From positions 1-64,000 of IMG/VR virus record IMGVR_UViG_3300044640_001495: a stretch of DNA of 64,000 nt, one strand, 5' to 3'. Shown here piece after piece: positions 1 to 58,222 of this stretch. The notes under the pieces were generated by a model. That model worked only from the letters and a program-made list of their open reading frames with translations. It had not been told where the DNA came from and ran no database searches. How positions within the stretch are numbered: the first letter of the stretch is position 1; each line of letters opens with the position of its first letter. Position numbers and translations under genes: made by a program.

Positions 1-126
1 GTATTCTATAATGGTGTTGAGCAGACTAAAGTTTCAGGAACATTTGGCACAGCCAACTATACTAACTCTACAGACAGTTTAGCCATAGGTAATATAAGCG
101 GTGGCAACAACAGTTTTGATGGCAAG

Positions 127-792
127 ATGGCCATGGTTAGAATCAGTAACACGGCCAAGTATGCCGCGGCATTTACTTCCACAGTGACTTATGGTGTTGA
201 ATCAGATACTCGATTGTTCTTGGACTTGGGTTACCCGTTATCTGATACATCTTATTATGAGTTGAATGGTGTATCGGTAGTCACTAACACTCTGACCACT
301 ATCTATATTTCCAAGTCAGCGTATCCTAATTTAGATAAACAAGTTCGAGTAGGCAATACCGTAACAAATACTAGCGATTCCACAACTTGCATAGTCACCG
401 CACCAGTGTTCACAGCAGATCCTAGTAACTGGGGAGTAGATGTTTCACCTGGATGGGGCGGCGTGGCCACAGTAAACTTCACTGGTGCTAGACATACTAT
501 CGTCAACAACGGTACAACTGTGAGTGAAGAGTTCCCGAACACATTCACTGGATTAGTACATCCTTATAATGGCGGCACGCTAGGCCTTACTATGTGTCTT
601 GCAAATGATCCTAGATTTGCCGAGTCAGCGGCTATACCAATCGGTGCTAGAATAACCAGCAACATAGCAGGCTTTGGTATTAGAACTGTAACGGCCATCG
701 TGGTCTCGGGCGGCGACAGATTTATATCATACGATCCTACAGGATTGACCGGTGTTACCAGCACTTCACATGTGTTTAACTTCTATTGGTAA
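127..792 (+). CDS. C-terminal part of a virion/tail-fibre-like protein (LamG-type region); gene begins upstream of the window
   Basis: Thr/Ser/Gly-rich beta-type ORF. The upstream frame is open to the window edge, so the true start lies outside the window. Confidence 0.5.
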   Translation: MAMVRISNTAKYAAAFTSTVTYGVESDTRLFLDLGYPLSDTSYYELNGVSVVTNTLTTIYISKSAYPNLDKQVRVGNTVTNTSDSTTCIVTAPVFTADPSNWGVDVSPGWGGVATVNFTGARHTIVNNGTTVSEEFPNTFTGLVHPYNGGTLGLTMCLANDPRFAESAAIPIGARITSNIAGFGIRTVTAIVVSGGDRFISYDPTGLTGVTSTSHVFNFYW

Positions 793-795
793 TTG

Positions 796-1230
796 ATGTT
801 TGAACACCGGAGGCTGGCAGTTGACGCAGGGCTGGCAGAACAGATACAACATCAGCGTGGTTTGGACTATAGACGCAGGTACGGAGCAGGCTGGCAGAGT
901 ATAGGGTATACTGGTCAGCCTTTTCCATGGTTTGAATCAACATATAGGGCAGTTGAAGCAGAAGCGGGTAGTATAGACACATGGTGGTTTAATGCGAACC
1001 TACAGGGCGAAGGCACAGGTTGGCATAGTCACAGTCAGTGGGCACGAGTAGGTGTGCTGTATGTACAAGTTCCCGCGGGTCTTATAGAGTTTAAGCAGGG
1101 CGAAGCATACTGGACAGAATCACCCCAAGCAGGAGATTTACTAGTATTTCCCGGGGCATTAGAGCATAGAGTAAGGCCCAACACTAGCGAGCAGGTTAGA
1201 ATCAGCGTGGCGTTCAACTTTAAACGGTAA
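796..1230 (+). CDS. 2OG-Fe(II) oxygenase superfamily protein (TIGR02466-like)
   Basis: WHSH facial-triad motif, then LLVFPGALEHRV and RISVAFN. Confidence 0.8.
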   Translation: MFEHRRLAVDAGLAEQIQHQRGLDYRRRYGAGWQSIGYTGQPFPWFESTYRAVEAEAGSIDTWWFNANLQGEGTGWHSHSQWARVGVLYVQVPAGLIEFKQGEAYWTESPQAGDLLVFPGALEHRVRPNTSEQVRISVAFNFKR

Positions 1231-1251
1231 ATACTCACAGAGGATATAATA

Positions 1252-1998
1252 ATGGCCGCAAACGGAATATCAACACTATCAACTAAACAGTTAAAGCAAG
1301 AAGCCAAGCTAGGCATCGCACAAACAAGACGACAAGCAGCAGGCGATACTACTGCGCCATACTATAGAGAAAATAACACCTACGATATAGATAATCTGCC
1401 TACTAAGTATTCTGGAAATACATTAGTGAATAATTCTAATCCAGGTGGATTATTGCAAGGGCGTCCATGGATTAACGTTGCAGCTATTACATTTACATCT
1501 GGAGTTTATCATCGCACAGTAACTGGCACAACAAATGCTAATGGCTATTTTGGTACTGATTTTACTCCGGCTAACGATGATCTAACATTTTTCGATACCT
1601 ATGCTGCTACTTCTCAAGGTGTCTATACAAGTTTAAACTTATCCAGCCTACCAGAATATACCAGCATTATGCTGACAGGATACTTCTTAGCACCTACTAC
1701 AGATACCTATACATTCTACACCAGCACCGACGATGCTAGTTATATGTGGATAGGCCCGGATGCTATTACAGGATATACTCATACTAATGCCGTTGTAAAG
1801 AACGGCGGTCTTCACGGTGTTACAGAAGTGAGCGGGACTATAGCAATGACAGCGAACATCTACTATCCTTTCCGTGTTATGTTTGGTAACCTAACAGGAC
1901 CAGGCACAATGACGGTTAGTTGGGCAAGTAGTACACAATCTAAAACATCAAACTGGTCTGGTAAACTGTTCTACAACTCAGCCACTAACGGATTCTAA
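1252..1998 (+). CDS. PA14-domain virion-associated protein
   Basis: GYFLAPTTDTYTFYTSTDDASYMWI is the PA14 DD Ca/carbohydrate-binding signature. Confidence 0.75.
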   Translation: MAANGISTLSTKQLKQEAKLGIAQTRRQAAGDTTAPYYRENNTYDIDNLPTKYSGNTLVNNSNPGGLLQGRPWINVAAITFTSGVYHRTVTGTTNANGYFGTDFTPANDDLTFFDTYAATSQGVYTSLNLSSLPEYTSIMLTGYFLAPTTDTYTFYTSTDDASYMWIGPDAITGYTHTNAVVKNGGLHGVTEVSGTIAMTANIYYPFRVMFGNLTGPGTMTVSWASSTQSKTSNWSGKLFYNSATNGF

Positions 1999-2400
1999 AT
2001 GTACAGAAAATATATCAACATTGTAGAAGCAGCAAACAAAGGCTGTCCTATTGCCACACACGATCTAGAAGTAAATGTCAAGAATAGACAAACAGCTATA
2101 GACAAACACCACTACGGTCCTGCCAATCCTGATGAGCCTGGCAACTATTGGAAAGACGCAGCCAAGCAGTGGGATATAAACGAAAAGACTGCCAAGACAA
2201 TGACCTGTGGTAATTGTGCGGCATTCAACATCACCGATGCAATGTACAAGTGCATACACGACGGAATGGGCGCAGAGGCATACGAAGCAGAGAAAACTCG
2301 CGAAGCAGCTGATCTAGGCTACTGTACTCTACTACACTTTAAATGTGCTGGAACCCGTAGCTGTCAACTTTGGATCACTGGCGGACCTATTGTAAAGTAA
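1999..2400 (+). CDS. Cys-rich hypothetical protein
   Basis: CGNC...C...YC...KC...SC..W pattern; 133 aa ORF abutting its neighbours. Confidence 0.6.
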   Translation: MYRKYINIVEAANKGCPIATHDLEVNVKNRQTAIDKHHYGPANPDEPGNYWKDAAKQWDINEKTAKTMTCGNCAAFNITDAMYKCIHDGMGAEAYEAEKTREAADLGYCTLLHFKCAGTRSCQLWITGGPIVK

Positions 2401-2401
2401 T

Positions 2402-3037
2402 ATGATTACGCTATCCGATAATCAGTTTGATGCAAATGGTTATTGGGACCAGCCCATAGAGAAACTGCTGTACCAACCCACCATAGATGATCTTGATCTA
2501 TTTGACCAGAACGGATACGACCTCACTCCCTTAGAACAACATTTTGCCTACGGCAACAGAGCTAAACCTAAAAAGCACAGAGAACATCTACGAGCCCTTA
2601 AACAGGATTGGTTTATGCAACAGCCTACCACAGAAGGCTCACATCTTAATCATAGCCTACTGTTTGAACGCAAAGGCTACACAGGTGCTGCACTAGAAGA
2701 ATTGGAATACTGGGCTCGTACACTGCCTTTGGTCAACAAGGTGATAGCACTACGTCCTAAATGGGGCTTGGACTTTTCTATGGACTATGCTGACCGTGCG
2801 GGCAATGTCTTTGAAGTACTACACTGGGAATGGGACAGCTTTGTCTACGAAGAAACAGAATATATTCGCAAAATTGTAGAACCTGTGTTGCTGGCCATAG
2901 ACTGGCGTGATGCTGCCCAACAGATCCTAGCACAGAAAGACAAGTGGCATCATCTAGACTTCTTTGCACAGAGTCGTTGGAAGTGTGAGTACTTTGGCAT
3001 CCCAGAGGAGCGATTCAAAATGGTTGCTTGGAACTAA
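2402..3037 (+). CDS. hypothetical protein
   Basis: 211 aa ORF in a tightly packed operon. Confidence 0.6.
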   Translation: MITLSDNQFDANGYWDQPIEKLLYQPTIDDLDLFDQNGYDLTPLEQHFAYGNRAKPKKHREHLRALKQDWFMQQPTTEGSHLNHSLLFERKGYTGAALEELEYWARTLPLVNKVIALRPKWGLDFSMDYADRAGNVFEVLHWEWDSFVYEETEYIRKIVEPVLLAIDWRDAAQQILAQKDKWHHLDFFAQSRWKCEYFGIPEERFKMVAWN

Positions 3038-3061
3038 ATAATAGCACTTATTGGAGTATAC

Positions 3062-3502
3062 ATGAAACAATTTCTATTACTGCTGTTGGCAGTACCTGCA
3101 CTAGCATTTGCACAGGGCAAGATGCCCGCAAAGTCAGCGACCTACGATGCACAGGTTATTAGAGTGAGTGATGGCGATACTATTGTAATCGCCGCTCCCT
3201 TTCTCCCACAGCCACTCAAGCCCGAACTTGCTGTTAGGATCTACGGAGTCGACACGCCAGAAAAAGGACACAGAGCTCAATGTCCACAAGAAGACCAACG
3301 AGCGCAATTGGCGAGTAAATTTACAACTCAAGCCTTACAATCCCACCCAAAGCACCAGGTTATTATCTATGGATGGGATAAGTTTGGTGGCCGTATATTG
3401 GGAGACATCTTGGTAAACGGACAAAGCATTAGACAGGGACTTATCAGCAATGGCTTGGCCCGTGAATACTACGGTGAAGCCAAACAAAGCTGGTGTAATT
3501 AA
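3062..3502 (+). CDS. thermonuclease (staphylococcal nuclease-like) with signal peptide
   Basis: RVSDGDTI, RIYGVDTPE and DKFGGRILG motifs; hydrophobic N-terminus; GGAG RBS. Confidence 0.9.
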   Translation: MKQFLLLLLAVPALAFAQGKMPAKSATYDAQVIRVSDGDTIVIAAPFLPQPLKPELAVRIYGVDTPEKGHRAQCPQEDQRAQLASKFTTQALQSHPKHQVIIYGWDKFGGRILGDILVNGQSIRQGLISNGLAREYYGEAKQSWCN

Positions 3503-3514
3503 TTTAGAACAGAA

Positions 3515-3616
3515 CATCTACCTTAGGAACGCTTGCGTTACTTAGATGTGCCCGGCTGCTGGGCAGAACGTTATGGGAGTCGTGCCCCGGAATGGCGTTC
3601 TAAGTGAGCATTTTTT
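3515..3616 (+). ncRNA. candidate structured intergenic RNA (three hairpins plus possible pseudoknot), family unknown
   Basis: Stems catcta/tagatg (containing aacg-CUUG-cgtt), tgcccgg/ctgggca and agaacgttat/atggcgttct, followed by a T-run. Confidence 0.5.
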
Positions 3617-3655
3617 TACGACCCTAGAATAAATACAGTACAGGAGGACACAACC

Positions 3656-3814
3656 ATGAAACAGCGTAAATTATTAATGAAGCTGTACAAGGCTTGCGTC
3701 GACCATGATACTGAAACAGTTTCCGAACTACGTAAAAAAGAGTTCGCTAAGATACGGAAACACAAGGCCGAAGGTAAGTCATTTACACGCAAATGGACTT
3801 TGGTACAGATTTAA
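3656..3814 (+). CDS. small basic hypothetical protein (52 aa; not in ORF track)
   Basis: AGGAGG RBS, ATG..TAA, MKQRKLLMKLYKACVDHD...; ATAAATA at 3629-3635 upstream. Confidence 0.7.
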   Translation: MKQRKLLMKLYKACVDHDTETVSELRKKEFAKIRKHKAEGKSFTRKWTLVQI

Positions 3815-3859
3815 CACAACTGTAACATTACACACAGCCTAGGGCGATAAATATTAGCT

Positions 3860-4744
3860 ATGCTAAAAACTTATCGCTCTATTTTTATATCCGATGTGCA
3901 TTTAGGTACTAGAGATAGTCAAGCTGATAAGTTAAACAACTTTCTCAAACACAACACCTGCGAAACACTCTATATGGTAGGGGACATACTAGATGTATGG
4001 CGCATACAACAAAACAAATGGCGTTGGAAGCAATCACACACCAATGTTGTAAGACGTATACTTGGACATGCCAAACGTGGCACACGAGTAATCTACGTAG
4101 CAGGCAATCACGATGAATTCTTAAGACCATTAATGCCCTACGGTATTAACTTTGGCAATGTGGAAGTGGTTAATCAATTTGAACATGTTGGGGTAGACGG
4201 CAAACACTATCTAGTCACCCACGGCGACCTGTTTGACGGCATTACCCGACTGGCACCGTGGTTGGCATTCTTAGGTGATAAGGCCTATGACTTTATTCTA
4301 TCTGCCAACAGCAAGTTCAATTGGCTACGACATCGTATGGGTTTTGGCTATTGGAGTTTGAGCAAGTATCTTAAAGCCCGTGTTAAGAAAGCAGTAGACT
4401 TTATATTTCAGTTTGAACGGAATCTAATGGCCTACTGTAAGAAACGCGGCTTTGACGGTGTCATATGCGGACACATACATCACGCAGAGATCAAAGAGAT
4501 AGATGGCATTACGTATATGAATGACGGCGACTGGGTTGAATCGTGTACAGCACTTGTAGAGCACCACGATGGTAAGTGGGAAATCATAACTTGGACTAAG
4601 GAGCGAGACGATGTGGATACTGATACTAATAGCGGTTCACGTGAACAATCCTCAAGACGTTCCGGGAAGAATAGAACTAGCATTCAAAGATCAAGCCAGT
4701 TGCGAGATGACCCTAGCGTCGATGAAGTGGCAGCTAAAGTTTAA
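3860..4744 (+). CDS. plcP: PlcP-like / LpxH-family metallophosphoesterase (putative phospholipase C)
   Basis: SDVHLG, VGDILDVW, GNHD, HGDLFD, GHIH and GDWVESCTA motifs, plus the amphipathic WLAFLGD..YWSLS segment typical of PlcP. Confidence 0.7.
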   Translation: MLKTYRSIFISDVHLGTRDSQADKLNNFLKHNTCETLYMVGDILDVWRIQQNKWRWKQSHTNVVRRILGHAKRGTRVIYVAGNHDEFLRPLMPYGINFGNVEVVNQFEHVGVDGKHYLVTHGDLFDGITRLAPWLAFLGDKAYDFILSANSKFNWLRHRMGFGYWSLSKYLKARVKKAVDFIFQFERNLMAYCKKRGFDGVICGHIHHAEIKEIDGITYMNDGDWVESCTALVEHHDGKWEIITWTKERDDVDTDTNSGSREQSSRRSGKNRTSIQRSSQLRDDPSVDEVAAKV

Positions 4745-4765
4745 TAATTTTAAGGTAGAAGGCAA

Positions 4766-5482
4766 ATGCCAAAAACAATAAGTGATAAAATTACCATAGT
4801 GGTACCCTGTAAGAATGAGGAAAACTACATTGCGCATTTGCTAATGCATCTACGCCAACAATCAATAGGCAACACCAGAATTATCATTGCAGATTGTTCC
4901 ACAGACAAAACACGAGAAGTTATCGAAATAATGAAAGGTGAGTTGAATGTTGAGGTTATCGATGGCGGGCCTGTTAGCTTTGCTAAGAACAACGGAGCTC
5001 GATTGGTTAATACGCCCTACATATTATTCATTGATGCTGATGTGCGCTTCTTTAAAGACACTGTGATTCAAGATGCTGTCAATTTGATTGAGAGTAAGAA
5101 CCTAGATCTCATTGGCCTAAACATCAAATGCTACGACAAGGATCTAAGAGCTAAAGTCGGATTTACTACATTTAATCTAATCAATCATGCATTAAAATTC
5201 TTCTCACCCTTTGCTGTGGGAGCATTCATGCTGACCCGCAGAGATCGTTTTGAAGAGTTTGGGGGATTTCCTGAACAGTTTTCCACAAGCGAAGACTTCT
5301 TCTTATCACGCAAGTATAGCCCTAAAAAGTTTAGAATCATTCGCCATCACTTTGGACAAGATAGCCGTAGGTTTAAGAAGATGGGCTATATGGGCATGGC
5401 CAAGTACCTAGTTAAGAACTTTGTCAATCGCAATAATAAAGCCTACTGGGACAGTTTAGACAGCAGTAGATACTGGAGTTAA
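4766..5482 (+). CDS. glycosyltransferase family 2
   Basis: IVVPCKNEE, IADCSTD, FIDADV (DxD) and SEDFFLSR motifs. Confidence 0.9.
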   Translation: MPKTISDKITIVVPCKNEENYIAHLLMHLRQQSIGNTRIIIADCSTDKTREVIEIMKGELNVEVIDGGPVSFAKNNGARLVNTPYILFIDADVRFFKDTVIQDAVNLIESKNLDLIGLNIKCYDKDLRAKVGFTTFNLINHALKFFSPFAVGAFMLTRRDRFEEFGGFPEQFSTSEDFFLSRKYSPKKFRIIRHHFGQDSRRFKKMGYMGMAKYLVKNFVNRNNKAYWDSLDSSRYWS

Positions 5483-6055
5483 AACAAGTTCGTAGAGTTC
5501 ACTCCAATTCTTGACTACAGGGTAAGAACACTTGTGATGCATATTATGCCCGTGTTCAATAAGAACAGATTTCAAACCTAAAGCATGTCCGACATCAGCA
5601 TTGGCAGGTTTATCTTCAATCCACCACAGGCCGCTGTCTTTGTATGGAGCCAATGCAGAATCTTTGTCTGCGCCTGTATCTAGGCAAATAACTGTTTCGA
5701 TAGCATTGCCAAACAACTTACGTAGATTCATTTCACGCAGTTTCTGTGCGTTCTTGTCCAGACTTAGGCTTGTGATAACACGGAATTCGTAGCCGTGTTC
5801 TTCATGTAGTCGTTTAACATAGTGAGCAGCATCTCTAAGTGCAGGAAGGAATCCAATTGCTGCAGATTCGTTAAAAGTCTTTACAACCTTTTTGGCATCT
5901 TTTTCTTCTAGTTCGTTATAGTGGTGATGTAGATAATAGCTTTTCTTGTTATCCGCTGTTAGTGTGTATCCACGTTCTTGCATCCAAACTGAGAACGCCC
6001 ATTCCCAATCTAACAAGACGCCATCGGCATCGGTGAGTATAAGTTTGTTTTTCAT
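5456..6055 (-). CDS. HAD-family 5'(3')-deoxyribonucleotidase-like phosphatase
   Basis: LTDADGVLLDW (DxDG), ITS and IEDKPAN motifs. Confidence 0.8.
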   Translation of the reverse strand: MKNKLILTDADGVLLDWEWAFSVWMQERGYTLTADNKKSYYLHHHYNELEEKDAKKVVKTFNESAAIGFLPALRDAAHYVKRLHEEHGYEFRVITSLSLDKNAQKLREMNLRKLFGNAIETVICLDTGADKDSALAPYKDSGLWWIEDKPANADVGHALGLKSVLIEHGHNMHHKCSYPVVKNWSELYELVLTPVSTAV

Positions 6056-6060
6056 ACTGT

Positions 6061-6089
6061 ATTATAACATACTTTAACCCTTGTGTCAA
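6061..6089 (-). promoter_or_regulatory. sigma70-type promoter
   Basis: TTGACA-N17-TATAAT on the minus strand just upstream of the HAD gene. Confidence 0.85.
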
Positions 6090-6104
6090 CGGGCTAAGTA
6101 AAAT

Positions 6105-6809
6105 ATGAATATAATAATCGCAACCTTGGTAATGGTTCAAATTACCATAGCCTGTGTCACTCTATACCTACATAGAAGTCAAGCACACAGAGCAGTACAA
6201 TTTCACCCAATCCTGGCACATCTAATGCGCTTTTGGCTATGGTTATCAACCGGTATGGTGACCAAACAATGGGTAGCCATCCATCGCAAACATCACCAGA
6301 AGAGTGATCAAGAGGGCGATCCGCATAGTCCCCAAATATACGGAATTTGGCGTGTGCTATTTGGCGGAGCATTCTTATATCACAAGGCTAGCAAAGATAC
6401 CGCAATGATCGATCAGTTGAGCACAGGCACACCTAATGACTGGATCGAGCGTAAACTTTATACCCCGCACAGCCGCTTAGGGATTCTTTTAATGTTGGTC
6501 ATAGACCTTGTTCTTTTTGGCCCTATAGGTTTAGTGGTGTGGGGTATTCAAATGATTTGGATTCCAATATGGGCAGCTGGAGTTATCAACGGACTCAGCC
6601 ATTGGTGGGGATATCGAAATGTTGAAACCAACGACACTTCGAAGAATTTAATACCCTGGGCTTTCTGGATAGGCGGCGAGGAGCTACACAACGGGCATCA
6701 TGCAGACGGAGCCAATGCTAAGTTTAGTCAACGTTGGTGGGAGTTCGATATTGGCTGGATGTATATCTGTATACTGCGGTTCTTTAAATTAGCAACAGTT
6801 AGAGCATAA
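6105..6809 (+). CDS. membrane acyl-CoA/acyl-lipid (delta-9 type) fatty acid desaturase
   Basis: Three His boxes HRSQAH, HRKHH and ELHNGHH, with transmembrane segments. Confidence 0.92.
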   Translation: MNIIIATLVMVQITIACVTLYLHRSQAHRAVQFHPILAHLMRFWLWLSTGMVTKQWVAIHRKHHQKSDQEGDPHSPQIYGIWRVLFGGAFLYHKASKDTAMIDQLSTGTPNDWIERKLYTPHSRLGILLMLVIDLVLFGPIGLVVWGIQMIWIPIWAAGVINGLSHWWGYRNVETNDTSKNLIPWAFWIGGEELHNGHHADGANAKFSQRWWEFDIGWMYICILRFFKLATVRA

Positions 6810-6840
6810 AGAAAAAGCACCCGAAGGTGCTTTTCTTTTT
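6810..6840. terminator. bidirectional intrinsic terminator
   Basis: aaaagcacc-CGAA-ggtgctttt with A and T tracts, between convergent genes. Confidence 0.85.
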
Positions 6841-6873
6841 ACCACTATATATTTTTGCTCTATGAGCGTAATA

Positions 6874-7146
6874 TTATTTCTTTACGCCTGCATTAACAAA
6901 TGCGTACATTTTTTCGGCGGTCTCTAATACTTTATCTAAACCTGGAAACTCTGGCATTTGAACTGTGCTAACAATTTGACCAGTCTTCTCATCACGAGTA
7001 GCTGTCATTTCCCAACCTGCAAACTTAGATTGAAAGTCGTCTTGCACTAGGCTTTTAGCCATGCCCAAGATATCTGTACGGATTTCATAACCGTTTTTAT
7101 TGAATTTAACTTCTGGTAGCTTTGGTGCTGTAAAAATTTCTGACAT
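6874..7146 (-). CDS. hypothetical protein (start moved to MSEIFTAP)
   Basis: AGGAG RBS before the ATG at 7146. Confidence 0.65.
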   Translation of the reverse strand: MSEIFTAPKLPEVKFNKNGYEIRTDILGMAKSLVQDDFQSKFAGWEMTATRDEKTGQIVSTVQMPEFPGLDKVLETAEKMYAFVNAGVKK

Positions 7147-7236
7147 AATAATCTCCTGTGTGTTAATGTCTGTTGCTAACAACTACTTCTTTTTCGCTGT
7201 TAGTTTATTATATATGCCTAGAGACAAAAAAGCAAC

Positions 7237-7812
7237 TTATTTTCTGAACTTTTTTACTCGTTCCTTGATAAGGGTTACCACTTCATCACTAAGCACTACT
7301 TCGTAGTGGTTGTATTGGACTTCCACTAGTTCCATATCCTTATGATGTTTCTGGCTAGCAATGGTCACAACCCCGTCATTGGGCTCGTGCATAAAAGGAC
7401 TTTGTCCTTTTACAGTCACAATGTTAGTCCACGGGTGCTGTATTTTAATACGGCTAGCTTGCTTCATAACCCACGAACTAGGACCAATGTCTCGCATTAG
7501 TCTGCTAAAAGGCAAAAAGTATTGAGCATAGTCCGCTACTTCGGCGCCCCCATACGGAGTACTAAGTGTAATAGCACCGTTAACAGATTCCGGAATACAG
7601 TTGGCTAAGTGTAGGCTGTAGATACCACCTAGACTGTGTGCAACAAATACTAGATCTTTATAATCTTTTAGTGTTGCCTGCATGTCTTTTAGGTTGTTTT
7701 CGAACCCGTTACGACTGTCGTAATTGATATCGATACCTTGACCTAATTTACTTCTGATATAATTGAAGCTTTCGCTGGTGGCATTAGCACCGTGTATGTA
7801 CACCAAGTTCAT
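7237..7812 (-). CDS. alpha/beta hydrolase (esterase/lipase-like)
   Basis: YIHG oxyanion region, AHSLGG nucleophile elbow, NDGVV Asp and NHYEV His. Confidence 0.85.
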   Translation of the reverse strand: MNLVYIHGANATSESFNYIRSKLGQGIDINYDSRNGFENNLKDMQATLKDYKDLVFVAHSLGGIYSLHLANCIPESVNGAITLSTPYGGAEVADYAQYFLPFSRLMRDIGPSSWVMKQASRIKIQHPWTNIVTVKGQSPFMHEPNDGVVTIASQKHHKDMELVEVQYNHYEVVLSDEVVTLIKERVKKFRK

Positions 7813-7830
7813 GCCAATATTTATCGGAAT

Positions 7831-7953
7831 TTATTTGGCTAACATTATGTCTCTAGCTTCTTTGTGCATGCCTGCACGAGCCATTGCCGCAGCGGCGCGA
7901 GCCTGTCCAATACTTAGGCCGATTTCGTATAATGCGTTTAAAAATGATTTCAT
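7831..7953 (-). CDS. small Ala-rich hypothetical protein (40 aa)
   Basis: MKSFLNALYEIGLSIGQARAAAAMARAG...; ATGA overlap with the upstream ORF. Confidence 0.55.
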   Translation of the reverse strand: MKSFLNALYEIGLSIGQARAAAAMARAGMHKEARDIMLAK

Positions 7954-8126
7954 AGATAGCTTTCCTTTTGAGAATTGAATTGTCGGATGTAGTTTTCCAA
8001 CTGTGCGGCATCGGTAATGCCTTTGGTGCTTAGATAAGCGTCTAAGCGGCTTTGGTAATTGGATCCTGGGAACATTTCTGCTAATCGTTCCAATATAGCC
8101 AGCATCCTGCTTGATAAGTATTTCAT
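7950..8126 (-). CDS. small protein resembling DUF3563 (58 aa; not in ORF track)
   Basis: MKYLSSRMLAILERLAEMFPGSNYQSRLDAYLSTKGITDAAQLENYIRQF; GAGAG RBS; translational coupling to the next ORF. Confidence 0.55.
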   Translation of the reverse strand: MKYLSSRMLAILERLAEMFPGSNYQSRLDAYLSTKGITDAAQLENYIRQFNSQKESYL

Positions 8127-8257
8127 ATTGTTCTCTCTGTGTTGTAGTACTCATGGTTTCTACTGAGTTATTTATCCAGCTCTTGTGCAATCGCGCATTT
8201 TTCAGTACAATGTTATAATTGTTTAAAATGAGTTAAATACATGATAGGAAACAATTT

Positions 8258-8545
8258 ATGAAACTTCGTACCAGATCAATTCTGCAGGAACTCAATGAAA
8301 TTGCCGAAGTACGCAATACGGATTCGTTGATCGAAAGCCGTGCCACCAACATCATTAATTCCGCTATTAATCTGTTGGAAAGCATACACAAGCATTATGA
8401 CGCTGAAAGTGCTGACGAATTAGAGCGTCGATTGATCAATGCTATCAAAGGACAAGATCCCAGTAAATTTACCCGCGGTGTACGAAGATTGGCAGAATCG
8501 CGTAAGGCCAAAAGAAAACTAGAAGAATCTAACAACAATGAATAA
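8258..8545 (+). CDS. hypothetical phage protein
   Basis: 95 aa ORF after a TAAATA motif. Confidence 0.65.
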   Translation: MKLRTRSILQELNEIAEVRNTDSLIESRATNIINSAINLLESIHKHYDAESADELERRLINAIKGQDPSKFTRGVRRLAESRKAKRKLEESNNNE

Positions 8546-9347
8546 GCTATTTGAAGGCGGTAATGTATTCAAGGACGCCGATAAAAAATCACTAACGCAA
8601 CGCATCGCCACAGGCGACGTTGAGTCGACGGTCCTGTATATCGAAAAGATCACAGGCCTGGACTTTACCAAAGAAAAACACGCAGATGACAAAAAACCGG
8701 TGAAATGGTTGGGCACCACAGGCCGCAAAGAAGATCCAGATGGCACCTTTGAGCGCAACAGTTCCGGGGATCTAGATCTTTCAGTGGATGCCAATGAAGT
8801 AGACAAAAGAGCCTTTGCCGACAAATTGATAGCACAGTTTGGCAAAGAAAATGTCAAGCTCAGCGGAGATAATGTGCATTGGAAAACTCCTATCAACGGT
8901 GATGCTGCCAATGGGTTTGTGCAAGCTGACTTTATGTTTTCCGCAAATCCCAAGTTTCAACAAGGTAGCATGATCGGTGGACAGGGTGAGTACCGTGGAG
9001 AGCACCGCCACATTGTATTGAGTTCAATTGCCCGTGCTAGAGGCATGAAGTACAGTCCCAAACATGGTTTACTAAACGCTACCACAGACGAACTGTTACC
9101 TGACGGCAACGATTGGAATGTGATCAGCAAGCAGCTATTGGGACAATCAGCCACGGTCAAAGACATTCGTTCTGTGGACACCATTCTCAATTATATCAAG
9201 AAACTGCCCAACTACGAAGAGCTAGTTGCAGGTGCTAGAGAAACACTAGGCAAACAAGGAATCGAATTGCCGAAGAACGAAGCCTTTGAAAGCTATCAAC
9301 CTGGAACAATAGGTTGGATGCGCAGAATGATAAACATTACAAAATGA
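8538..9347 (+). CDS. putative Pol-beta-superfamily nucleotidyltransferase-like protein
   Basis: LGTTG...SSGDLDLSVD and VQADFM (third acidic residue) pattern. Confidence 0.5.
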   Translation: MNKLFEGGNVFKDADKKSLTQRIATGDVESTVLYIEKITGLDFTKEKHADDKKPVKWLGTTGRKEDPDGTFERNSSGDLDLSVDANEVDKRAFADKLIAQFGKENVKLSGDNVHWKTPINGDAANGFVQADFMFSANPKFQQGSMIGGQGEYRGEHRHIVLSSIARARGMKYSPKHGLLNATTDELLPDGNDWNVISKQLLGQSATVKDIRSVDTILNYIKKLPNYEELVAGARETLGKQGIELPKNEAFESYQPGTIGWMRRMINITK

Positions 9348-10444
9348 GAGCATTTGAATTCCTAATTGAAGACGAAGCGGCTCCTGCACCCAAGAAAGTG
9401 GGCCGTGAGTTTAATCACCTAGAAGATCTAGTGTTCACAGAGGCCAATGGTGCTGTCAAAGCCATACAGATCCTAAAAGATTTAGCCAGTCCAGAAACCA
9501 GTATTACCATTAAGTGGGACGGCAACCCCACAGTCTATTGGGGACGTGAAGAAGATGGCACCTTCCGCATGGTAGGCAAGAACAACTGGGGACGTGAAGA
9601 AGGCAAAAGCTCTAACCCAGAAGAATTAAAACAGTTTATCATGAGTCGTGGCAAAGGTGAAGACTGGCGTCCTAAATTTGCCAGTGATATGGCCGCACTG
9701 TGGCCCATATTTGAAAAGGCAACACCTGCAGAATTCCGTGGCTATGTTTATGGAGATATTCTATTCCATCCAGGTAAACCCTATAAAGGTGGCGATGGTA
9801 AAATATCATTCACTCCTAATCAAACCACTTATTCCGTGACAGGCAGCAGTGAAGTTGGCCGTCAGTTGGCCAAGGCCAAAGTGGCAGTGGCAGCACACAA
9901 ACTGTTCAGTTACTTTGGAGACAAGAGTGGTGAAGACTTCAATGACGTTGAGCAGTTCAGTGGTAACCCTGAACTCAAGGTGTTTGGACTCACCAGTGTG
10001 AGTTACAGACCTGCTGTGGGAGCAGATAATCTCAGCAAGATAGAAGCATTGGCCAAAAATCAGCGGGCAATAAACAACCTGTTGGCTCCTGTAGCAGGCA
10101 TGGGCTATCTGCAGAGTGAGATCTATACCTTTGTGAACACTCAATCAAAGGCCAAGCAATTGGACAACATCAACACAGAAGCGTTCATGTCTTTTGTGCA
10201 AAAAACTCCTGCTAAAGCTGCCAAGATCACAGCACACAGCGAACAACATCCAGGAGTTATGGACAAGTTGTTTGAACTGGTGCGTGAAATCATGGCAGCC
10301 AAAGATGAAGTAATACGTGAGTTAGACGCTGCCGGAGGTGACATTACAGCCACAACAGGTGGCAAGCCCGGCGGGGAAGGCTATGTTGCTGGTGGTTCAA
10401 AGTTGGTACCTAGAGACCGCTGGACTCCTTTTAGAGCCGACTAA
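9344..10444 (+). CDS. ligase-like (KxDG) nucleotidyltransferase, DUF6267-like
   Basis: HLED..., TIKWDGNP motif I, YVYGDILF and GGEGYV; ATGA overlap places the start at 9344. Confidence 0.55.
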   Translation: MRAFEFLIEDEAAPAPKKVGREFNHLEDLVFTEANGAVKAIQILKDLASPETSITIKWDGNPTVYWGREEDGTFRMVGKNNWGREEGKSSNPEELKQFIMSRGKGEDWRPKFASDMAALWPIFEKATPAEFRGYVYGDILFHPGKPYKGGDGKISFTPNQTTYSVTGSSEVGRQLAKAKVAVAAHKLFSYFGDKSGEDFNDVEQFSGNPELKVFGLTSVSYRPAVGADNLSKIEALAKNQRAINNLLAPVAGMGYLQSEIYTFVNTQSKAKQLDNINTEAFMSFVQKTPAKAAKITAHSEQHPGVMDKLFELVREIMAAKDEVIRELDAAGGDITATTGGKPGGEGYVAGGSKLVPRDRWTPFRAD

Positions 10445-10478
10445 AATCAGCCGTATCGGCGTGATTTTTTCAATCCAA

Positions 10479-10486
10479 TATAAATA
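10479..10486 (+). promoter_or_regulatory. T4-like late promoter TATAAATA
   Basis: Exact TATAAATA. Related (A/C/T)TAAATA motifs precede many structural-type genes (3629, 3847, 11416, 12305, 15262, 17297, 24653, 31542, 45792). Confidence 0.65.
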
Positions 10487-10558
10487 CTGTATAAGAATCA
10501 AGGTGATTCTTATATATTGCCGGTCCCGGAGCGGGATCATTGATAAGGAGAAAACATC

Positions 10559-10924
10559 ATGGCAGAAACAACAAGAGTAAACCCCACAGCAGTAGCATTG
10601 GGCACACTACAATCTACACTACAACTAAAACTGTTTAAGTGTGTTTTGAATAACAGCGGCGATGCAACAGCACGTAACGCAGCAACTATGTCACTATTGA
10701 CAGATGAAATCGGCACTACCGGTGCATTGATGCAAGGCAAGGCCAACGGTCTTGAGCTAGCATTTATCGGTGACGGTCACGCTCTTGACGTTGACACAGT
10801 TGCAATCCGTTTAGGCCGTATCATTGCAGCAGGTTCACGTACATCTTCTGGTGTTTGGACATTTACAGGCGGTGGTACATTGACTGTAACTAACCCAACA
10901 ACTTTTGTTGGTCTACAGACCTAA
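10559..10924 (+). CDS. putative small virion structural protein
   Basis: Late promoter, AAGGAG RBS, Ala/Thr/Gly-rich, followed by a terminator. Confidence 0.55.
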   Translation: MAETTRVNPTAVALGTLQSTLQLKLFKCVLNNSGDATARNAATMSLLTDEIGTTGALMQGKANGLELAFIGDGHALDVDTVAIRLGRIIAAGSRTSSGVWTFTGGGTLTVTNPTTFVGLQT

Positions 10925-10953
10925 TTAGTTAATTCTCAGGGATGGGAAGCACT

Positions 10954-10976
10954 AAAGCACCTTCGGGTGCTTTTTT
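10954..10976 (+). terminator. intrinsic terminator
   Basis: aaagcacc-TTCG-ggtgcttttttg. Confidence 0.85.
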
Positions 10977-11014
10977 GTTGGCTGGTCAATCGTAGGCGTA
11001 AATAGTAGCACATT

Positions 11015-11419
11015 ATGGCACGCTATCAAGTTATTACTCTCGTAGACATCACTAGAACTCACGCTAGTAGATATGAAACTGATCAATTGAAATTAGGACA
11101 ACAGGCCAACTTCAACGCTCTTCAACAGGCAATTGGCCTGCGTTCTAATTTTTCCTTTCTGTCCGACCCCAGTCAACAGTCCGGACAGTTGCCAAGAGAC
11201 CTAGAAGGTAAGGCTACTTATTGGACTTGGAACTTTGATACAGAACGTGATAGTGTTTTTCTCAAAGGTCAAGACCCAGTTGGCCTGTTAATTGACGATA
11301 TCAATGGGGTTCCTATAACCAATCAACTAAATAATTCAGTTGATATAGATCCAGCAGCATTTATTAGTAAAGGTGATCGTGCAAATATTTGGATATACGA
11401 AATCACACAAGCGGGATAA
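11015..11419 (+). CDS. hypothetical protein
   Basis: 134 aa ORF after a TAAATA motif. Confidence 0.65.
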   Translation: MARYQVITLVDITRTHASRYETDQLKLGQQANFNALQQAIGLRSNFSFLSDPSQQSGQLPRDLEGKATYWTWNFDTERDSVFLKGQDPVGLLIDDINGVPITNQLNNSVDIDPAAFISKGDRANIWIYEITQAG

Positions 11420-11515
11420 ATACAATTTAACAGGCAAAACCATTAGGCATTTCGGAACACTTAGGCACATGGCTCGGAGCGAGCACTTGACTTAACATAA
11501 AAGGAAACAGCCATA

Positions 11516-11821
11516 ATGGCCACAACCGTAGAACGACTTGGTGTAGTAGAGACCAAGGTAGCAAACCTAGACGAAAAATTAGACGAGATCAAGGTTGATG
11601 TCAAAGACATGCACGACTGTCTAGACAAGACTCGCGACAGTGTCATGGCCAAATTAGATGACATGTACGGAGCAAGCTGTGAACAACATAGTCAATTGGC
11701 CAGTAAAATTACAGAATTAGAACGTTTCAAACAAAAATGGATCTATATGACAGCAGGCGGCATAGCAGTGTTGGGCTTTTTATCCGGCCACTCTGCAACA
11801 TTTGCCAGCTTGTTCAAGTGA
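11516..11821 (+). CDS. coiled-coil protein with C-terminal TM helix (XhlA/holin-like)
   Basis: Heptad repeats followed by WIYMTAGGIAVLGFLSG. Confidence 0.55.
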   Translation: MATTVERLGVVETKVANLDEKLDEIKVDVKDMHDCLDKTRDSVMAKLDDMYGASCEQHSQLASKITELERFKQKWIYMTAGGIAVLGFLSGHSATFASLFK

Positions 11822-11863
11822 CAGGTTGAATACAATTAAATAAGGGCCATAGGTCCTTTTTTT

Positions 11864-12304
11864 ATGACTAACATTTCTAAACGCTTAGAGCAAGTAGTTA
11901 GTTCTGCACAACAAAGATTAATTGAAAAACATCAAATTCTCCCAGTTAAAGTCGCAGAAGGAATCCTTGTGGGCGATGTACTCATTGTCAGCGAAGGCAT
12001 TGTCAAACACCTTAGATATAATGACACCTGGCTTTACAAAGACATTTACCTAAATGCAGCAGCCATACGATTGGCCAATATGTTGGCTGTAAACAAACTG
12101 TCAATTCACGCTGATAAGCTGCATAGGGCAGATCAGGAGTACGGCCGCTGGTACCATGACAGTCAAATGCTTCGTGCTCAATATCAAAAAGCACAGCTCA
12201 AACATGATCACAACCGTGCAGACATGTTATGGGCTAGATACTGTGAAAGCAGAGATCGAGCTATAAATGCCAAAAACATTGTGCAGCGATTGACCTGCAT
12301 ATGA
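11864..12304 (+). CDS. hypothetical protein
   Basis: 146 aa ORF. Confidence 0.6.
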   Translation: MTNISKRLEQVVSSAQQRLIEKHQILPVKVAEGILVGDVLIVSEGIVKHLRYNDTWLYKDIYLNAAAIRLANMLAVNKLSIHADKLHRADQEYGRWYHDSQMLRAQYQKAQLKHDHNRADMLWARYCESRDRAINAKNIVQRLTCI

Positions 12305-12337
12305 ATAAATATACTATCATTCTGGACCTTAACTAAT

Positions 12338-13879
12338 ATGAAAACAACAGACCTTTTTGCATTCAATAGATCATCTAAAAGACTAAATGAATCGTTGTCT
12401 AAAACTTTTGGGCGTAAACTAAACTTAGAAACATTCAGTGTTGAACAGCTGGAAGATGCACGTAATAAACTACGCACACAGATCTACACGGCCCGTAGCA
12501 GTTCTAACTTCAACGAAACGGTGGAAAACGATGCTCTAACACAGGCACAGTTCATGCACGATGCTATTGTTGCAGAACTTGCAGAGCGTGATGAGCCTAT
12601 TGTTGACAACACACAACTAGAAGAAGCACAAGCGTTCTATGTAATGCTCTTGGGACCACGTTCTGGCCAACGTGATCCATACCACGGTCCTTTTAATAGT
12701 CCAGACGAAGCACAGGCATGGATTGACACTGAATCACCTAATCCGGAAGATTACGAAGTAGGCGATTTCCCTGCTGGACAATTTGGACAATATGATAATG
12801 GCCAACCAGTACAAGAAGGTATGACGGAAGGTGGCAACTTTGACGAACAAGCGGTAGTAGATCTTCTTAAGAAATTCGACGAAGATATGAATGAAATTGG
12901 CGGCTACGGTGATCCCGACTATGATAAAATTATGGCGGCTCTAAGCAAGGGTGATATTGAGTCTGCCATCGATGAAATTTGGAATTCTTATTCCGATCAA
13001 GATGGCGGCGAACTTCGCAATATAGATTCGTATATTCAAGATCTAGAATCCGAAATTAGTTATGTTGTACAAGGATCAGACGACGAAGGCGGCGACACCG
13101 ATGATGCATATGCCCTAGCATCAGCAGGTCATGGTGGCGATGAAGACTATGGAACTTTTAATCAAGGCGAAAGTCTACAGAATGAAGCGTATATTAATAA
13201 TGCAGAAGATGCAATTAATTTACTAGCGGCAATTAGAGCACAATCTAAAATGGCAGAACGTGGTGGCGGCGAACCAGTCCGCCCTAATCAACTGGTCAAT
13301 GACCTTTGGGATGTCATGCAATGGATTGAAGCCAACATGAAAGAATCAATTGAAACAGAATCAAAAAATACAGGAGATAATATGCGTAATCTAAGAGAAG
13401 GTGAAATCCAGCAAGCGTCTGCGATTGTCACAGCAAAGACAATGGTTGACAGAGTTGGCCGTTGGATCGAGGAACTTTCTGGTATGGAGAACGATACTCT
13501 ATTACAGTTAGGCGATTCTATCCGTGACGAAATGGGACAAGAGCAGGCCAAGCAGTTTATATCTGCATCAGCTCCGGCTATCCAATCGGCACTAGAAAAT
13601 CTCAAAGCTACTCGCGAGGCCCTAGCTTCCAGCGTGAGAGCACTTACTGGCGAAGAACAAAGTGCTGAAATGCTAGGCGGCGAGCCAGGTGCAGACATGG
13701 CAGCTCCTGCAGAACCAGACGCCATGAATGCCGAGCCAGGAATGGATATGGGCGACGAAGTTGCAGGTGACGACTTTGATGCAGCTGAACCAGCAGCAGG
13801 GGGCCTAGGTGATGCAGGACGTGAACAGCGTGAAAGCATTGATCGTCAAAGCCGTTTGATGAAAGTATTGGCAGGATGA
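12338..13879 (+). CDS. acidic prohead core/scaffold-like protein
   Basis: Very Glu/Asp-rich, helical, many (L/I)xE sites, late promoter at 12305. Confidence 0.5.
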   Translation: MKTTDLFAFNRSSKRLNESLSKTFGRKLNLETFSVEQLEDARNKLRTQIYTARSSSNFNETVENDALTQAQFMHDAIVAELAERDEPIVDNTQLEEAQAFYVMLLGPRSGQRDPYHGPFNSPDEAQAWIDTESPNPEDYEVGDFPAGQFGQYDNGQPVQEGMTEGGNFDEQAVVDLLKKFDEDMNEIGGYGDPDYDKIMAALSKGDIESAIDEIWNSYSDQDGGELRNIDSYIQDLESEISYVVQGSDDEGGDTDDAYALASAGHGGDEDYGTFNQGESLQNEAYINNAEDAINLLAAIRAQSKMAERGGGEPVRPNQLVNDLWDVMQWIEANMKESIETESKNTGDNMRNLREGEIQQASAIVTAKTMVDRVGRWIEELSGMENDTLLQLGDSIRDEMGQEQAKQFISASAPAIQSALENLKATREALASSVRALTGEEQSAEMLGGEPGADMAAPAEPDAMNAEPGMDMGDEVAGDDFDAAEPAAGGLGDAGREQRESIDRQSRLMKVLAG

Positions 13880-14154
13880 AATTTTTTGACATCACCAACG
13901 AGGGCGACTTCTTAAAAATTAGAGAACTTGCCCCAACGGTTGCTCCTGGCACCCCTGGAGCGCCGTTAGGTGCTGCACCAGCAGCAGGTCCTGCACCTAC
14001 TGCTGCTCCTGCTCAAGATCCGCAGATGCAACAAAAGATGATGGCACAGCAGGCGTTGGATCGCGCCAATCAAAAAAAACAAATTCAAGATCAAATAAAA
14101 TCAAAGCAAGAAGAACTTGCTGAATTACAAAAACAGTTGGCGGCTATAAAATGA
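13876..14154 (+). CDS. hypothetical protein (Pro/Ala linker plus coiled coil)
   Basis: ATGA overlap; N-terminus MKFFDITNE. Confidence 0.6.
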   Translation: MKFFDITNEGDFLKIRELAPTVAPGTPGAPLGAAPAAGPAPTAAPAQDPQMQQKMMAQQALDRANQKKQIQDQIKSKQEELAELQKQLAAIK

Positions 14155-14537
14155 GATTTTTTGAATTTAGCGGCGATGATGAAGGTGATCGATTCGTTAT
14201 GGTTCTTCGTAATTACATTGGTCGTGCCGCCAGTAAGAAGGCGCCTGCTAAATTAAATTGGAATGGACTCAACAAAGTTCTAGCCACAAATGGATTTGAA
14301 CTAACAGCAGACTACGAAACATTCAAGGCCATGTACGATTCAATACCAACTATTCAGCAGATGGTTAAGAATTTTAACGCTGACGGCATTGAACTAAACG
14401 TACCAGGTGCACCAGACGAAGAGCCAAAAGGTGACGGAACCAAATCCCCAGAAGATAGTCAAACAGCAGTAGACCAAACAGCAGCATCAGCAGCGGCCGG
14501 ACAATTGGCACAATCACAAGCAACACCCCAGACTTGA
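14151..14537 (+). CDS. hypothetical protein
   Basis: ATGA overlap; N-terminus MRFFEF. Confidence 0.6.
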   Translation: MRFFEFSGDDEGDRFVMVLRNYIGRAASKKAPAKLNWNGLNKVLATNGFELTADYETFKAMYDSIPTIQQMVKNFNADGIELNVPGAPDEEPKGDGTKSPEDSQTAVDQTAASAAAGQLAQSQATPQT

Positions 14538-14562
14538 CGTCCCCGTAGTTTTCCTGTAATAT
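14534..14562 (+). promoter_or_regulatory. sigma70-type promoter
   Basis: TTGACG-N17-TAATAT just upstream of the exonuclease gene. Confidence 0.6.
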
Positions 14563-14569
14563 ATACAGT

Positions 14570-15265: not shown

Positions 15266-15291
15266 ATACTCTATAACGGGAATTTACTACT

Positions 15292-24703: not shown

Positions 24704-24907
24704 ATGGTAACAGGAAAAGTAAAATGGTTTAACGACGCCAAAGGTTTTGGATTCATTACTCCGGACGATGGTGGCGCAGACTTATTTGCTCACTTTTCAC
24801 AGATTAATTCGAGTGGCTTCAAGAGCCTACAAGAAGGACAAAGTGTAAGGTTTGAAGTGACTCAGGGTCAAAAAGGCGAGCAGGCTAGTAATATTCAAGC
24901 TGCCTAA
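24704..24907 (+). CDS. cspA: cold-shock protein
   Basis: [17 protein letters not shown] (RNP1) and LFAHFS (RNP2). Confidence 0.95.
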
Positions 24908-24910
24908 AAA

Positions 24911-25270: not shown

Positions 25271-25271
25271 C

Positions 25272-25298: not shown

Positions 25299-25328
25299 GG
25301 CAATATTTCCAAATTATCGTCTCGAAGT

Positions 25329-58213: not shown

Positions 58214-58222
58214 AACGAATGG

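Follow-up and report, generated by a model that had tools for sequence, protein, structure and literature searches.

A phage operon apparently under phosphate-starvation control and predicted to renovate host membrane lipids, with a GT2 glycosyltransferase in the Agt slot

PlcP-mediated lipid renovation is a major bacterial response to phosphorus scarcity, in which a PlcP-type metallophosphoesterase gene is directly followed by that of a glycosyltransferase, usually the GT4 enzyme Agt, as in Sinorhizobium meliloti (SMc00171), Phaeobacter MED193, SAR11 HTCC7211, P. aeruginosa and Methylosinus OB3b (PMC4796936; PMC9239053; PMC9804370). PlcP followed by glycosyltransferases other than Agt has already been described in bacteria (PMC4796936), and a cyanobacterial beta-monoglucosyldiacylglycerol synthase and Mesorhizobium Pgt (Devers 2011, as cited in PMC4796936) represent the GT2/GT21 enzymes that act on diacylglycerol (DAG). 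PlcP shares its fold, metal-binding motifs and lid insertion with LpxH, the UDP-2,3-diacylglucosamine diphosphatase of lipid A synthesis. In phages, cyanophage pstS and phoA are reported to be under the control of host PhoB (Zeng & Chisholm 2012), and lipid desaturases have been described in cyanophages (PMC5776448). In contrast, we found no paper in the literature searched that describes PlcP-mediated lipid renovation as a phage function. Phage copies of the gene are deposited or listed as LpxH or LPS biosynthesis (PMC9611531).

Here, we examined a window comprising the first 64 kb (64,000 nucleotides) of a 353,123-bp IMG/VR phage record (IMGVR_UViG_3300044640_001495), which recurs in at least 23 lake-water runs. 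A first-pass annotation had proposed that a PlcP-like phospholipase C, a GT2 glycosyltransferase and a fatty acid desaturase constitute one phage lipid-remodeling module that may free membrane phosphate for DNA synthesis, replace phospholipid with glycolipid and adjust fluidity. The observation itself is confirmed, as all three genes are real and intact at 3860-4744(+), 4766-5482(+) and 6105-6809(+). Two details require correction. The ~600-bp interval between the GT2 and the desaturase is not empty, but is filled by a convergent minus-strand gene (5456-6055) that overlaps the GT2 3′ end by 27 nt; and the amphipathic insert regarded as part of the PlcP signature is the lid insertion that true LpxH also possesses, since the PlcP profile aligns over it to solved LpxH 5k8k, and is therefore not diagnostic of PlcP. 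The interpretation is partly supported: the assignment to PlcP, the operon with a glycosyltransferase and the link to phosphate starvation are supported, the last by a Pho-box-like promoter that sister phages also place in front of pstS, whereas inclusion of the desaturase in a single module is not supported. A megablast of 3000-8000 against deposited phages found nothing, nor did a tblastn of the desaturase.

The 294-aa metallophosphoesterase (3860-4744) matches Pfam Metallophos at 46.7 bits and carries the calcineurin-like motif set (DxH, GD, GNHD, H, GHxH), with D12, H14, G41-D42, G82-N83-H84-D85, H121, H205 and H207 invariant in the family alignment, together with a low-complexity, disordered C-terminal tail of about 45 aa typical of the phage clade. 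It is 50-59% identical to members of bacterial PlcP operons, and no GTDB species genome holds a relative closer than 59% identity. Source annotations call it LpxH, and the closest solved structures by profile are LpxH (62.8 bits), although a single-sequence search of the PDB returned no match. A true LpxH working on lipid A precursors is nonetheless very unlikely. The protein scores 46.1 and 35.2 bits against the curated LpxH equivalog models NF003743 and TIGR01854, whose cut-offs are 134 and 190 bits, and five beta/gamma-proteobacterial genomes hold both a true LpxH (228-333 bits) and a PlcP-like paralogue (38-55 bits) that is 52-56% identical to the window protein. In a phylogeny, the comparison that the first-pass annotation had itself named as a check, a fully supported (100) long branch separates the six LpxH rows from the 78 PlcP-like rows, and the 39 phage rows form a clade with support of 100 nested among the bacterial PlcP-like rows. 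This PlcP clade is anchored by synteny and the literature, as the tree included no experimentally characterized PlcP (SMc00171, MED193_17359, PB7211_983 or PA3219).

The genomic company of the bacterial relatives points to DAG. About 55 of 80 bacterial plcP loci are followed by a GT4 Agt-like gene and others by BtaA/DUF3419 or a GT28 MGDG-synthase-like gene, contexts also described in PMC4796936 and PMC9239053. The view of the first-pass annotation that a GT2 partner is unusual is correct for bacteria, where 0 of 80 loci have it. Among these phages, however, GT2 is the commoner partner. Hundreds of lake phages carry the same cassette; at least 585 viral contigs carry the phage PlcP gene, and of 80 viral loci examined, 57 have the GT2 and 19 a GT4 directly downstream, 3 have a GT4 about 1 kb away, and 1 ends at the contig edge, such that a glycosyltransferase follows in 79 of 79 evaluable loci. 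About a quarter of sister phages (22 of 79 loci) carry the orthodox GT4 Agt-like partner (Glyco_transf_4 and Glycos_transf_1). The operon junction at 4745-4765 (TAAnAATTTTAAGGTAGAAGGnnn), which carries the ribosome-binding site of the downstream gene, and the first codons (M-x-K-T-I) are the same whether a GT2 or a GT4 follows. The partner changed at least 4 and most parsimoniously 8 times, and a single GT4 clade is rejected (p-AU 0.015). In the reverse direction, 78 of 80 GT2 loci have PlcP directly upstream and the other 2 are cut by the contig end. A 93-kb contig (L002) bearing a porin, TctC and a transporter was initially considered the bacterial source of the PlcP-GT2 pair; it shares six genes with this phage genome and is a related jumbo phage.

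The partner in the window (4766-5482) is a 238-aa GT2 that lacks the GT-B fold and GT4 domains of Agt. It matches Glycos_transf_2 (PF00535) at 67.1 bits, with D90-x-D92 and E176-D177 invariant, has no transmembrane segment and ends in a basic amphipathic C-terminus. Its structural model (pLDDT 90.6) adopts a predicted GT-A fold, whose matches include the Nostoc beta-monoglucosyldiacylglycerol synthase (TM 0.69) and carotenoid and dolichol-linked glycosyltransferases. With the Nostoc enzyme of 468 aa it shares only about 20% identity, without membrane-spanning segments, and the homology is no closer than to many other GT2 enzymes. The acceptor is not fixed by homology, as PDB profile, Foldseek, Swiss-Prot model and ESM Atlas searches all returned generic GT2 or GT-A hits. 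It remains possible, although unlikely, that the GT2 is merely co-transcribed with a PlcP-like esterase and glycosylates a polyprenyl phosphate, LPS or another envelope acceptor, for example for surface modification or superinfection exclusion. Consistent with this alternative are a weak PHROG hit to GtrB-like O-antigen conversion (27 bits), fold matches to the dolichol- and undecaprenol-linked enzymes AglE, AglI and RfbN, profile matches to GtrB, DPMS and ArnC, and the nearest bacterial relatives (at most 35% identity in 401 genomes), which pair with a DedA/VTT-LssY_C membrane protein and not with plcP. Against it, the GT2 occupies the same slot as the Agt-type GT4, the two replace each other repeatedly, the GT2 lies directly behind PlcP in 79 of 79 evaluable viral loci, and it lacks the transmembrane helices typical of GtrB and DPMS.

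Upstream of the operon, Pho-box-like direct repeats with an 11-bp period (3810-3837, +) comprise TTTAAC (3810-3815, one mismatch), TGTAAC (3821-3826, perfect) and ACACAG (3832-3837, degenerate). The first half-site is overlapped by the stop codon of a 52-aa ORF of unknown function (3656-3814, +) without a Pfam match, which is often conserved just upstream of the phage PlcP gene, its 3′ end coding KAEGKxFTxKWTLVQI recurring in roughly 20 of the 63 distinct upstream regions. A -10-like element, TAAATA (3848-3853, +), lies 6 nt before the ATG. Across loci, the exact pattern TGT[AC]A[CT]-N5-TGT[AC]A[CT] occurs in 40 of 63 distinct phage upstream regions, against 0.03% of shuffles, and 17 more have one perfect half-site. 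The first half-site lies 28 or 38-39 nt from TAAATA, which in turn lies 4-8 nt before the start codon with no Shine-Dalgarno sequence, from which a leaderless or near-leaderless plcP mRNA is inferred from sequence alone. This family-level geometry matches that expected of a PhoB-dependent promoter, namely two or more 7-bp direct repeats at an 11-bp period, about 10 bp upstream of a -10 element and replacing the -35, in an element shared with pstS. The half-site here is mostly TGTAAT/TGTAAC rather than the E. coli TGTCAT, although canonical TGTCAC/TGTCAT versions occur in L002 and in the loci numbered L026, L052, L057, L074 and L082.

In 740 kb of sequence, 54 of 81 hits of the repeat lie right upstream of PlcP and most of the rest upstream of neighboring genes, including a phage PstS (391.9 bits, cut-off 339), whereas only 2 hits occur in 677 kb of desaturase loci. 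In pelagiphage Mosig, whose genome announcement does not discuss the gene, the homologue sits next to a pstS-like gene. Only 3 of 80 bacterial plcP loci match the strict pattern. In the 353-kb genome of the window, the strict two-half-site pattern occurs at chance level (12 hits against 7-10 in shuffles) and misses the window's own variant; the composite pattern (at most one mismatch, plus TAAATA at family spacing) occurs only here, with five shuffles giving 0, 0, 0, 1 and 0. Metatranscriptome contigs touch the genes, although this RNA evidence is thin and could be DNA carry-over.

The desaturase (6105-6809, +) belongs to a separate, independently mobile cassette. Its 234 aa score 408.9 bits on NCBIfam DesA_fam (NF049918, cut-off 400), with the His boxes HRSQAH, HRKHH and HNGHH aligning with bacterial DesA, to the catalytic part of which it is 51-62% identical. 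It covers model positions 9-240 of 385 and lacks the ~150-aa C-terminal domain of bacterial DesA (~385-395 aa), a short form that is the rule among the top database hits (224-237 aa). Like the cyanophage lipid desaturases, it is a phage-encoded membrane desaturase with three His boxes, but it occurs in freshwater phages and has a fixed set of neighbors. Of 80 viral desaturase loci, 69 have the HAD-like phosphatase-fold gene (5456-6055, -; motif I DADGVL; phrog_420), 78 have orf102 (6874-7182, -; unknown function) and 55 have a small lipase/esterase-like alpha/beta hydrolase (7237-7812, -) with the nucleophile elbow HSLGG (S60) and invariant D146 (NDGVV) and H169. A perfect sigma-70 promoter (6061-6089, -; TTGACA-17-TATAAT with TG, 12 of 12 positions) precedes the HAD-like gene, and a bidirectional intrinsic terminator (6813-6834) separates the desaturase from the convergent orf102. 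The HAD-like gene was considered as the missing head-group phosphatase, but it travels with the desaturase rather than with PlcP and its family matches are below threshold; orf102 was considered as an electron donor for the desaturase, but it has no Cys or His and no family match.

The single co-regulated module is unlikely. In its favor, the genes lie within 3 kb of each other in the window, a desaturase lies within 5 kb of PlcP in 20 of 80 PlcP loci, the neighbors include a lipase-like hydrolase, and a Lake Baikal viral transcript table lists lpxH, SCD and a lipase together (PMC9611531). However, the genes form separate transcription units with opposite-strand genes, their own promoter and a terminator between them, the desaturase has no Pho box, and it keeps its own neighbors with or without PlcP, which lies within the flank in only 13 of 80 desaturase loci. 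In a complete 359.6-kb sister genome the two genes lie 65 kb apart. The desaturase probably acts on acyl chains of existing lipids, outside Pho control, and any adjustment of fluidity remains inference.

Collectively, we favor, with moderate confidence, the interpretation that 3810-5482 is a phage version of PlcP-Agt lipid renovation, with GT2 in the Agt slot. In this view, under host phosphate starvation, host PhoB would bind the Pho-box-like repeats and drive a probably leaderless transcript, whose first product, a peripheral-membrane and predicted Mn-dependent phospholipase C, would cleave host glycerophospholipids into DAG and a phospho-head group, making membrane phosphorus available for synthesis of the 353-kb phage genome. 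The second, a soluble, interfacial GT2 that has displaced the canonical GT4 Agt, would glycosylate the DAG to a phosphorus-free glycolipid and keep the membrane intact until lysis; because GT2 enzymes invert and GT4 enzymes retain, the product should be the beta-anomer. What the analysis establishes is the family placement, the gene pairing, the interchangeability of GT2 and GT4, and the promoter motif and its sharing with pstS, while substrates, catalysis, products, PhoB binding and the benefit to the phage are inferred. PlcP releases a phospho-head group rather than free phosphate, and no phosphatase is linked to the operon. An unlikely alternative, which does not exclude the phosphorus-economy reading and could hold together with it, is that the operon serves membrane manipulation rather than phosphorus economy, whereby degrading phospholipid and changing the surface lipid would aid lysis timing, block superinfection, or reduce grazing or antimicrobial sensitivity of the infected cell. 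Lipid-remodeled bacteria have altered membrane proteomes and altered predator and phage interactions (PMC9457565; PMC9804370), the cassette occurs in phages of very different sizes, and the window genome has phoH but lacks pstS. Against this, the Pho-box-like promoter shared with phage pstS ties expression to phosphate starvation, and the habitat is lake water; lakes are commonly P-limited. As with the cyanophage pstS and phoA genes, a phage gene sits behind a Pho-box-like repeat, and sister phages place pstS next to plcP behind the same repeat; in contrast to those genes, the proposed function is to release phosphorus already bound in the host membrane rather than to take it up, in freshwater phages of heterotrophs.

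More tentatively, and rated slightly less likely than not, phages of phosphorus-poor lakes may carry PhoB-controlled islands (pstS, plcP, a glycosyltransferase and a coiled-coil protein of unknown function) that would strip phosphorus from the host's own membrane during infection. Within them, the phage-specific 238-aa GT2 would be a new family of DAG beta-glycosyltransferase that has repeatedly displaced the GT4 Agt, and the whole a widespread viral route of lipid-phosphorus recycling currently hidden under the annotation "LpxH / cell-wall glycosyltransferase." If phages switch on this pathway through the host Pho regulon, a share of membrane phosphorus in lakes is routed into virions, and viral auxiliary-gene inventories would then misassign an abundant gene, found in at least 585 IMG/VR contigs and thousands of metagenome proteins at 75% identity or more. 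The natural GT2/GT4 swap behind one junction offers a ready-made experiment in non-orthologous displacement and a candidate new glycolipid synthase, and the Pho-box set gives a handle on host PhoB specificity and on host assignment.

The window is the first 64 kb of a 353,123-bp IMG/VR virus record judged 98% complete. It has 41% G+C and carries 23 tRNA genes, a class Ia ribonucleotide reductase and a DnaK homologue, and is thus part of a jumbo phage. The tRNA genes form a block at 58125-62198 that includes a tRNA-Ile with anticodon TAT, and the phage-encoded DnaK (Hsp70; 34556-36457) is 64-66% identical to bacterial DnaK found in phage-labelled records. ARAGORN further calls a permuted tmRNA-like gene with a 27-residue tag peptide at 24882-25318. 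Ahead of the genes considered here lies a protein with PA14 and GLEYA carbohydrate-binding domains (1252-1998; 76 and 48 bits), which is unusual in a phage, and nearby, at 3062-3502, a staphylococcal-nuclease homologue that often travels near the PlcP cassette. The same stretch recurs almost unchanged in at least 23 lake-water metagenome runs.

The three genes named by the first-pass annotation are all present as intact open reading frames, and its observation thus holds. Positions 3860-4744 encode a 294-aa calcineurin-like metallophosphoesterase, 4766-5482 a 238-aa GT2 glycosyltransferase, and 6105-6809 a 234-aa membrane desaturase with His boxes HRSQAH, HRKHH and HNGHH. The 622 bp between the GT2 and the desaturase are not empty, but are filled by a minus-strand gene (5456-6055) that has a HAD motif I (DADGVL) and overlaps the end of the GT2 gene. 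Downstream, on the minus strand, lie a 102-aa ORF (orf102; 6874-7182) and a 191-aa lipase-like alpha/beta hydrolase (7237-7812).

Several lines of evidence distinguish the metallophosphoesterase from LpxH, the name under which most of its relatives are deposited. The two LpxH equivalog models of NCBIfam give 46 and 35 bits, against cut-offs of 134 and 190. A single-sequence search of all PDB chains finds no LpxH; only a family profile reaches it, at 62.8 bits, and because that alignment runs across the lid insertion, the amphipathic insert that had been counted among the marks of the PlcP family is common to both families. The nearest genomes in a library of 185,579 species are alpha-, beta- and gamma-proteobacteria at 50-59% identity, and in about 55 of these 80 bacterial loci the gene is directly followed by a GT4 Agt-like glycosyltransferase. 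Where it is not, BtaA (DUF3419, betaine-lipid synthesis) or a GT28 MGDG-synthase-like gene was found. These are the plcP neighborhoods described for marine bacteria and methanotrophs (PMC4796936, PMC9239053). Five of these genomes also hold a true LpxH elsewhere (228-333 bits), while their PlcP-like paralogue scores 38-55 bits, the same range as the phage protein. In a maximum-likelihood tree, a fully supported long branch separates E. coli and five other LpxH rows from all 78 PlcP-like rows, although the PlcP clade is anchored by synteny and literature rather than by an experimentally characterized reference sequence.

The phage proteins constitute a clade of their own. At least 585 IMG/VR contigs encode a relative at 75-100% identity, and the protein database holds thousands more, mostly named LpxH, whereas no representative outside this cluster exceeds 57% identity. 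The 39 phage rows sampled form a 100* clade nested among bacterial PlcP-like rows. The contigs range from a T4-like phage with homing endonucleases to jumbo phages of 345-367 kb. One 93-kb ENA contig (L002) looked bacterial, but shares six genes with this phage genome and is a related jumbo phage; across positions 1-16882, it carries host-like envelope and transport genes around its PlcP-GT2 pair, namely, a Porin_4 porin, a TctC-like binding protein, a sodium:dicarboxylate symporter, an Asp/Glu racemase, rubrerythrin and rubredoxin.

The position behind PlcP is occupied by one of two types of glycosyltransferase. Of 80 viral loci, 57 have the window-type GT2 and 19 a GT4 directly behind PlcP, three have the GT4 about 1 kb away, and one ends at the contig edge; no locus has both types. 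Collapsed at 97% identity, these amount to 35 GT2 and 19 GT4 clusters. The stop-to-start junction (TAAnAATTTTAAGGTAGAAGGnnnATG) and the first codons (M-x-K-T-I) are conserved whichever gene follows, and the replacement therefore happened inside one operon frame. On a careful tree the partner type changes eight times; starred branches force at least four changes, no bootstrap tree has a single change, and an AU test rejects one GT4 clade (p = 0.015). In the reverse direction, of 80 viral loci found with the GT2, 78 have PlcP directly upstream and the other two are cut by the contig start.

In bacteria, by contrast, none of the 80 plcP loci has this GT2, and the best relative in 401 sampled Pseudomonadota genomes is 35% identical. 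There it belongs to a conserved operon, seen in five Pseudomonadota genomes, in which a GT2 of about 245 aa (31-35% identical to the phage GT2) is followed by a membrane protein with a DedA/VTT domain and an LssY_C domain; to our knowledge, no function has been described for this pair. The phage GT2 keeps its DxD and ED motifs, has no transmembrane segment, and is confidently predicted to fold into a GT-A domain (pLDDT 90.6). Its structural neighbors are mostly lipid- or polyprenol-linked GT2 enzymes, including the Nostoc beta-monoglucosyldiacylglycerol synthase at TM 0.69, but none is close enough to fix the acceptor. If the GT2 does glycosylate diacylglycerol, the beta-anomer of the product is expected, as for a GT2 in general. 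Thus, while the pairing of the genes and the exchange of partners are shown by the loci and the tree, functional equivalence of the GT2 with Agt is inferred from the shared slot and not from homology, as the binding of PhoB to the repeats described next is inferred from their sequence and arrangement alone.

Alignment of the upstream regions exposed a direct repeat, TGT[AC]A[CT]-N5-TGT[AC]A[CT], with an 11-bp period, which is the architecture of the Pho box (E. coli consensus CTGTCAT-N4-CTGTCAT). The exact pattern occurs within 100 nt in 40 of 63 distinct upstream regions, against 0.03% of shuffles, and another 17 have one perfect half-site; several loci carry canonical TGTCAC/TGTCAT half-sites. 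The first half-site lies 28 nt, or one helical turn more, from a TAAATA element, which in turn lies 4-8 nt before the ATG with no Shine-Dalgarno sequence, the geometry of a PhoB-type promoter, predicted to give a leaderless or near-leaderless mRNA. Across 740 kb of PlcP loci there are 81 matches, of which 54 lie right upstream of PlcP. Most of the remaining 27 lie right upstream of two neighboring genes, one encoding a bona fide PstS (NF008171, 391.9 bits, cut-off 339) and the other a 148-232-aa coiled-coil protein of unknown function (MRLEDLAARL...). The latter sits right after the glycosyltransferase in several sister phages (e.g., related loci L058:6710-7366, L052:4198-4845 and L038:6713-7159), and its own Pho-box-like repeat makes it a candidate new member of the phage Pho islands; it is absent from the stretch of the window studied (3000-8000). 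In 677 kb of desaturase loci there are two matches, one of them in front of a PlcP.

The window itself has TTTAAC (3810-3815), TGTAAC (3821-3826), a degenerate third repeat and TAAATA (3848-3853), a composite site that occurs once in the whole 353-kb genome. It differs from the perfect tandem of a sister phage by one base, where the stop codon of a conserved 52-aa ORF (3656-3814) overlaps the first half-site. This small ORF has a strong ribosome-binding site and no family match, and its C-terminal coding sequence is conserved upstream of PlcP in roughly 20 distinct phage loci. Both the PlcP-like gene and the HAD-like gene have, at 3848-3859 (plus strand) and 6061-6089 (minus strand), respectively, a -10 element ending about 6 nt before the start codon with no Shine-Dalgarno sequence, which suggests leaderless transcripts and may be a clue to the host. 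A parallel in the marine environment is the Pelagibacter phage Mosig, whose homologue sits next to a pstS-like gene; the intergenic region between the two (3851-4000 of the Mosig locus, L175) holds several TTTAAC/CTTAAC repeats and TAAATA 5 nt before the ATG, echoing the freshwater promoter layout with a different half-site.

The desaturase, which had been assigned to the same lipid-remodeling module, belongs to another cassette. It reaches the DesA family cut-off but covers only model positions 9-240 of 385, being 51-62% identical to the catalytic part of bacterial DesA and stopping where those proteins continue for about 150 residues. This short form is the rule: the top 120 database hits are 224-237 aa long, and 586 IMG/VR stretches encode a relative. 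In 80 such loci, its neighbors are orf102 (78), the HAD-like gene (69) and the lipase-like hydrolase (55), whereas PlcP is within the flank in 13. The hydrolase has an invariant S60-D146-H169 triad, in HSLGG and NDGVV contexts, and weak lipase and thioesterase matches. A perfect sigma-70 promoter serves the HAD-like gene, a bidirectional terminator closes the desaturase gene, and in a complete 359.6-kb sister genome the desaturase lies 65 kb from PlcP. Phage desaturases are already known from cyanophages and freshwater pelagimyophages (PMC5776448, PMC7029224).

Evidence of expression is limited to two freshwater metatranscriptome assemblies that contain contigs on this stretch, of which one 206-nt contig is identical to the GT2 end and divergent ones lie on PlcP and the desaturase; carry-over of DNA cannot be excluded as their source.

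Taken as a whole, the interpretation offered by the first-pass annotation is supported in part: its PlcP assignment and its proposed link to phosphate hold and are strengthened, while the desaturase should be split off from the module. Although the pathway is known in bacteria, its phage form, the displacement by a GT2 and the Pho-box islands are not described in the literature that could be searched. Within this phage form of the pathway, the GT2 is best read as a non-orthologous replacement of Agt.
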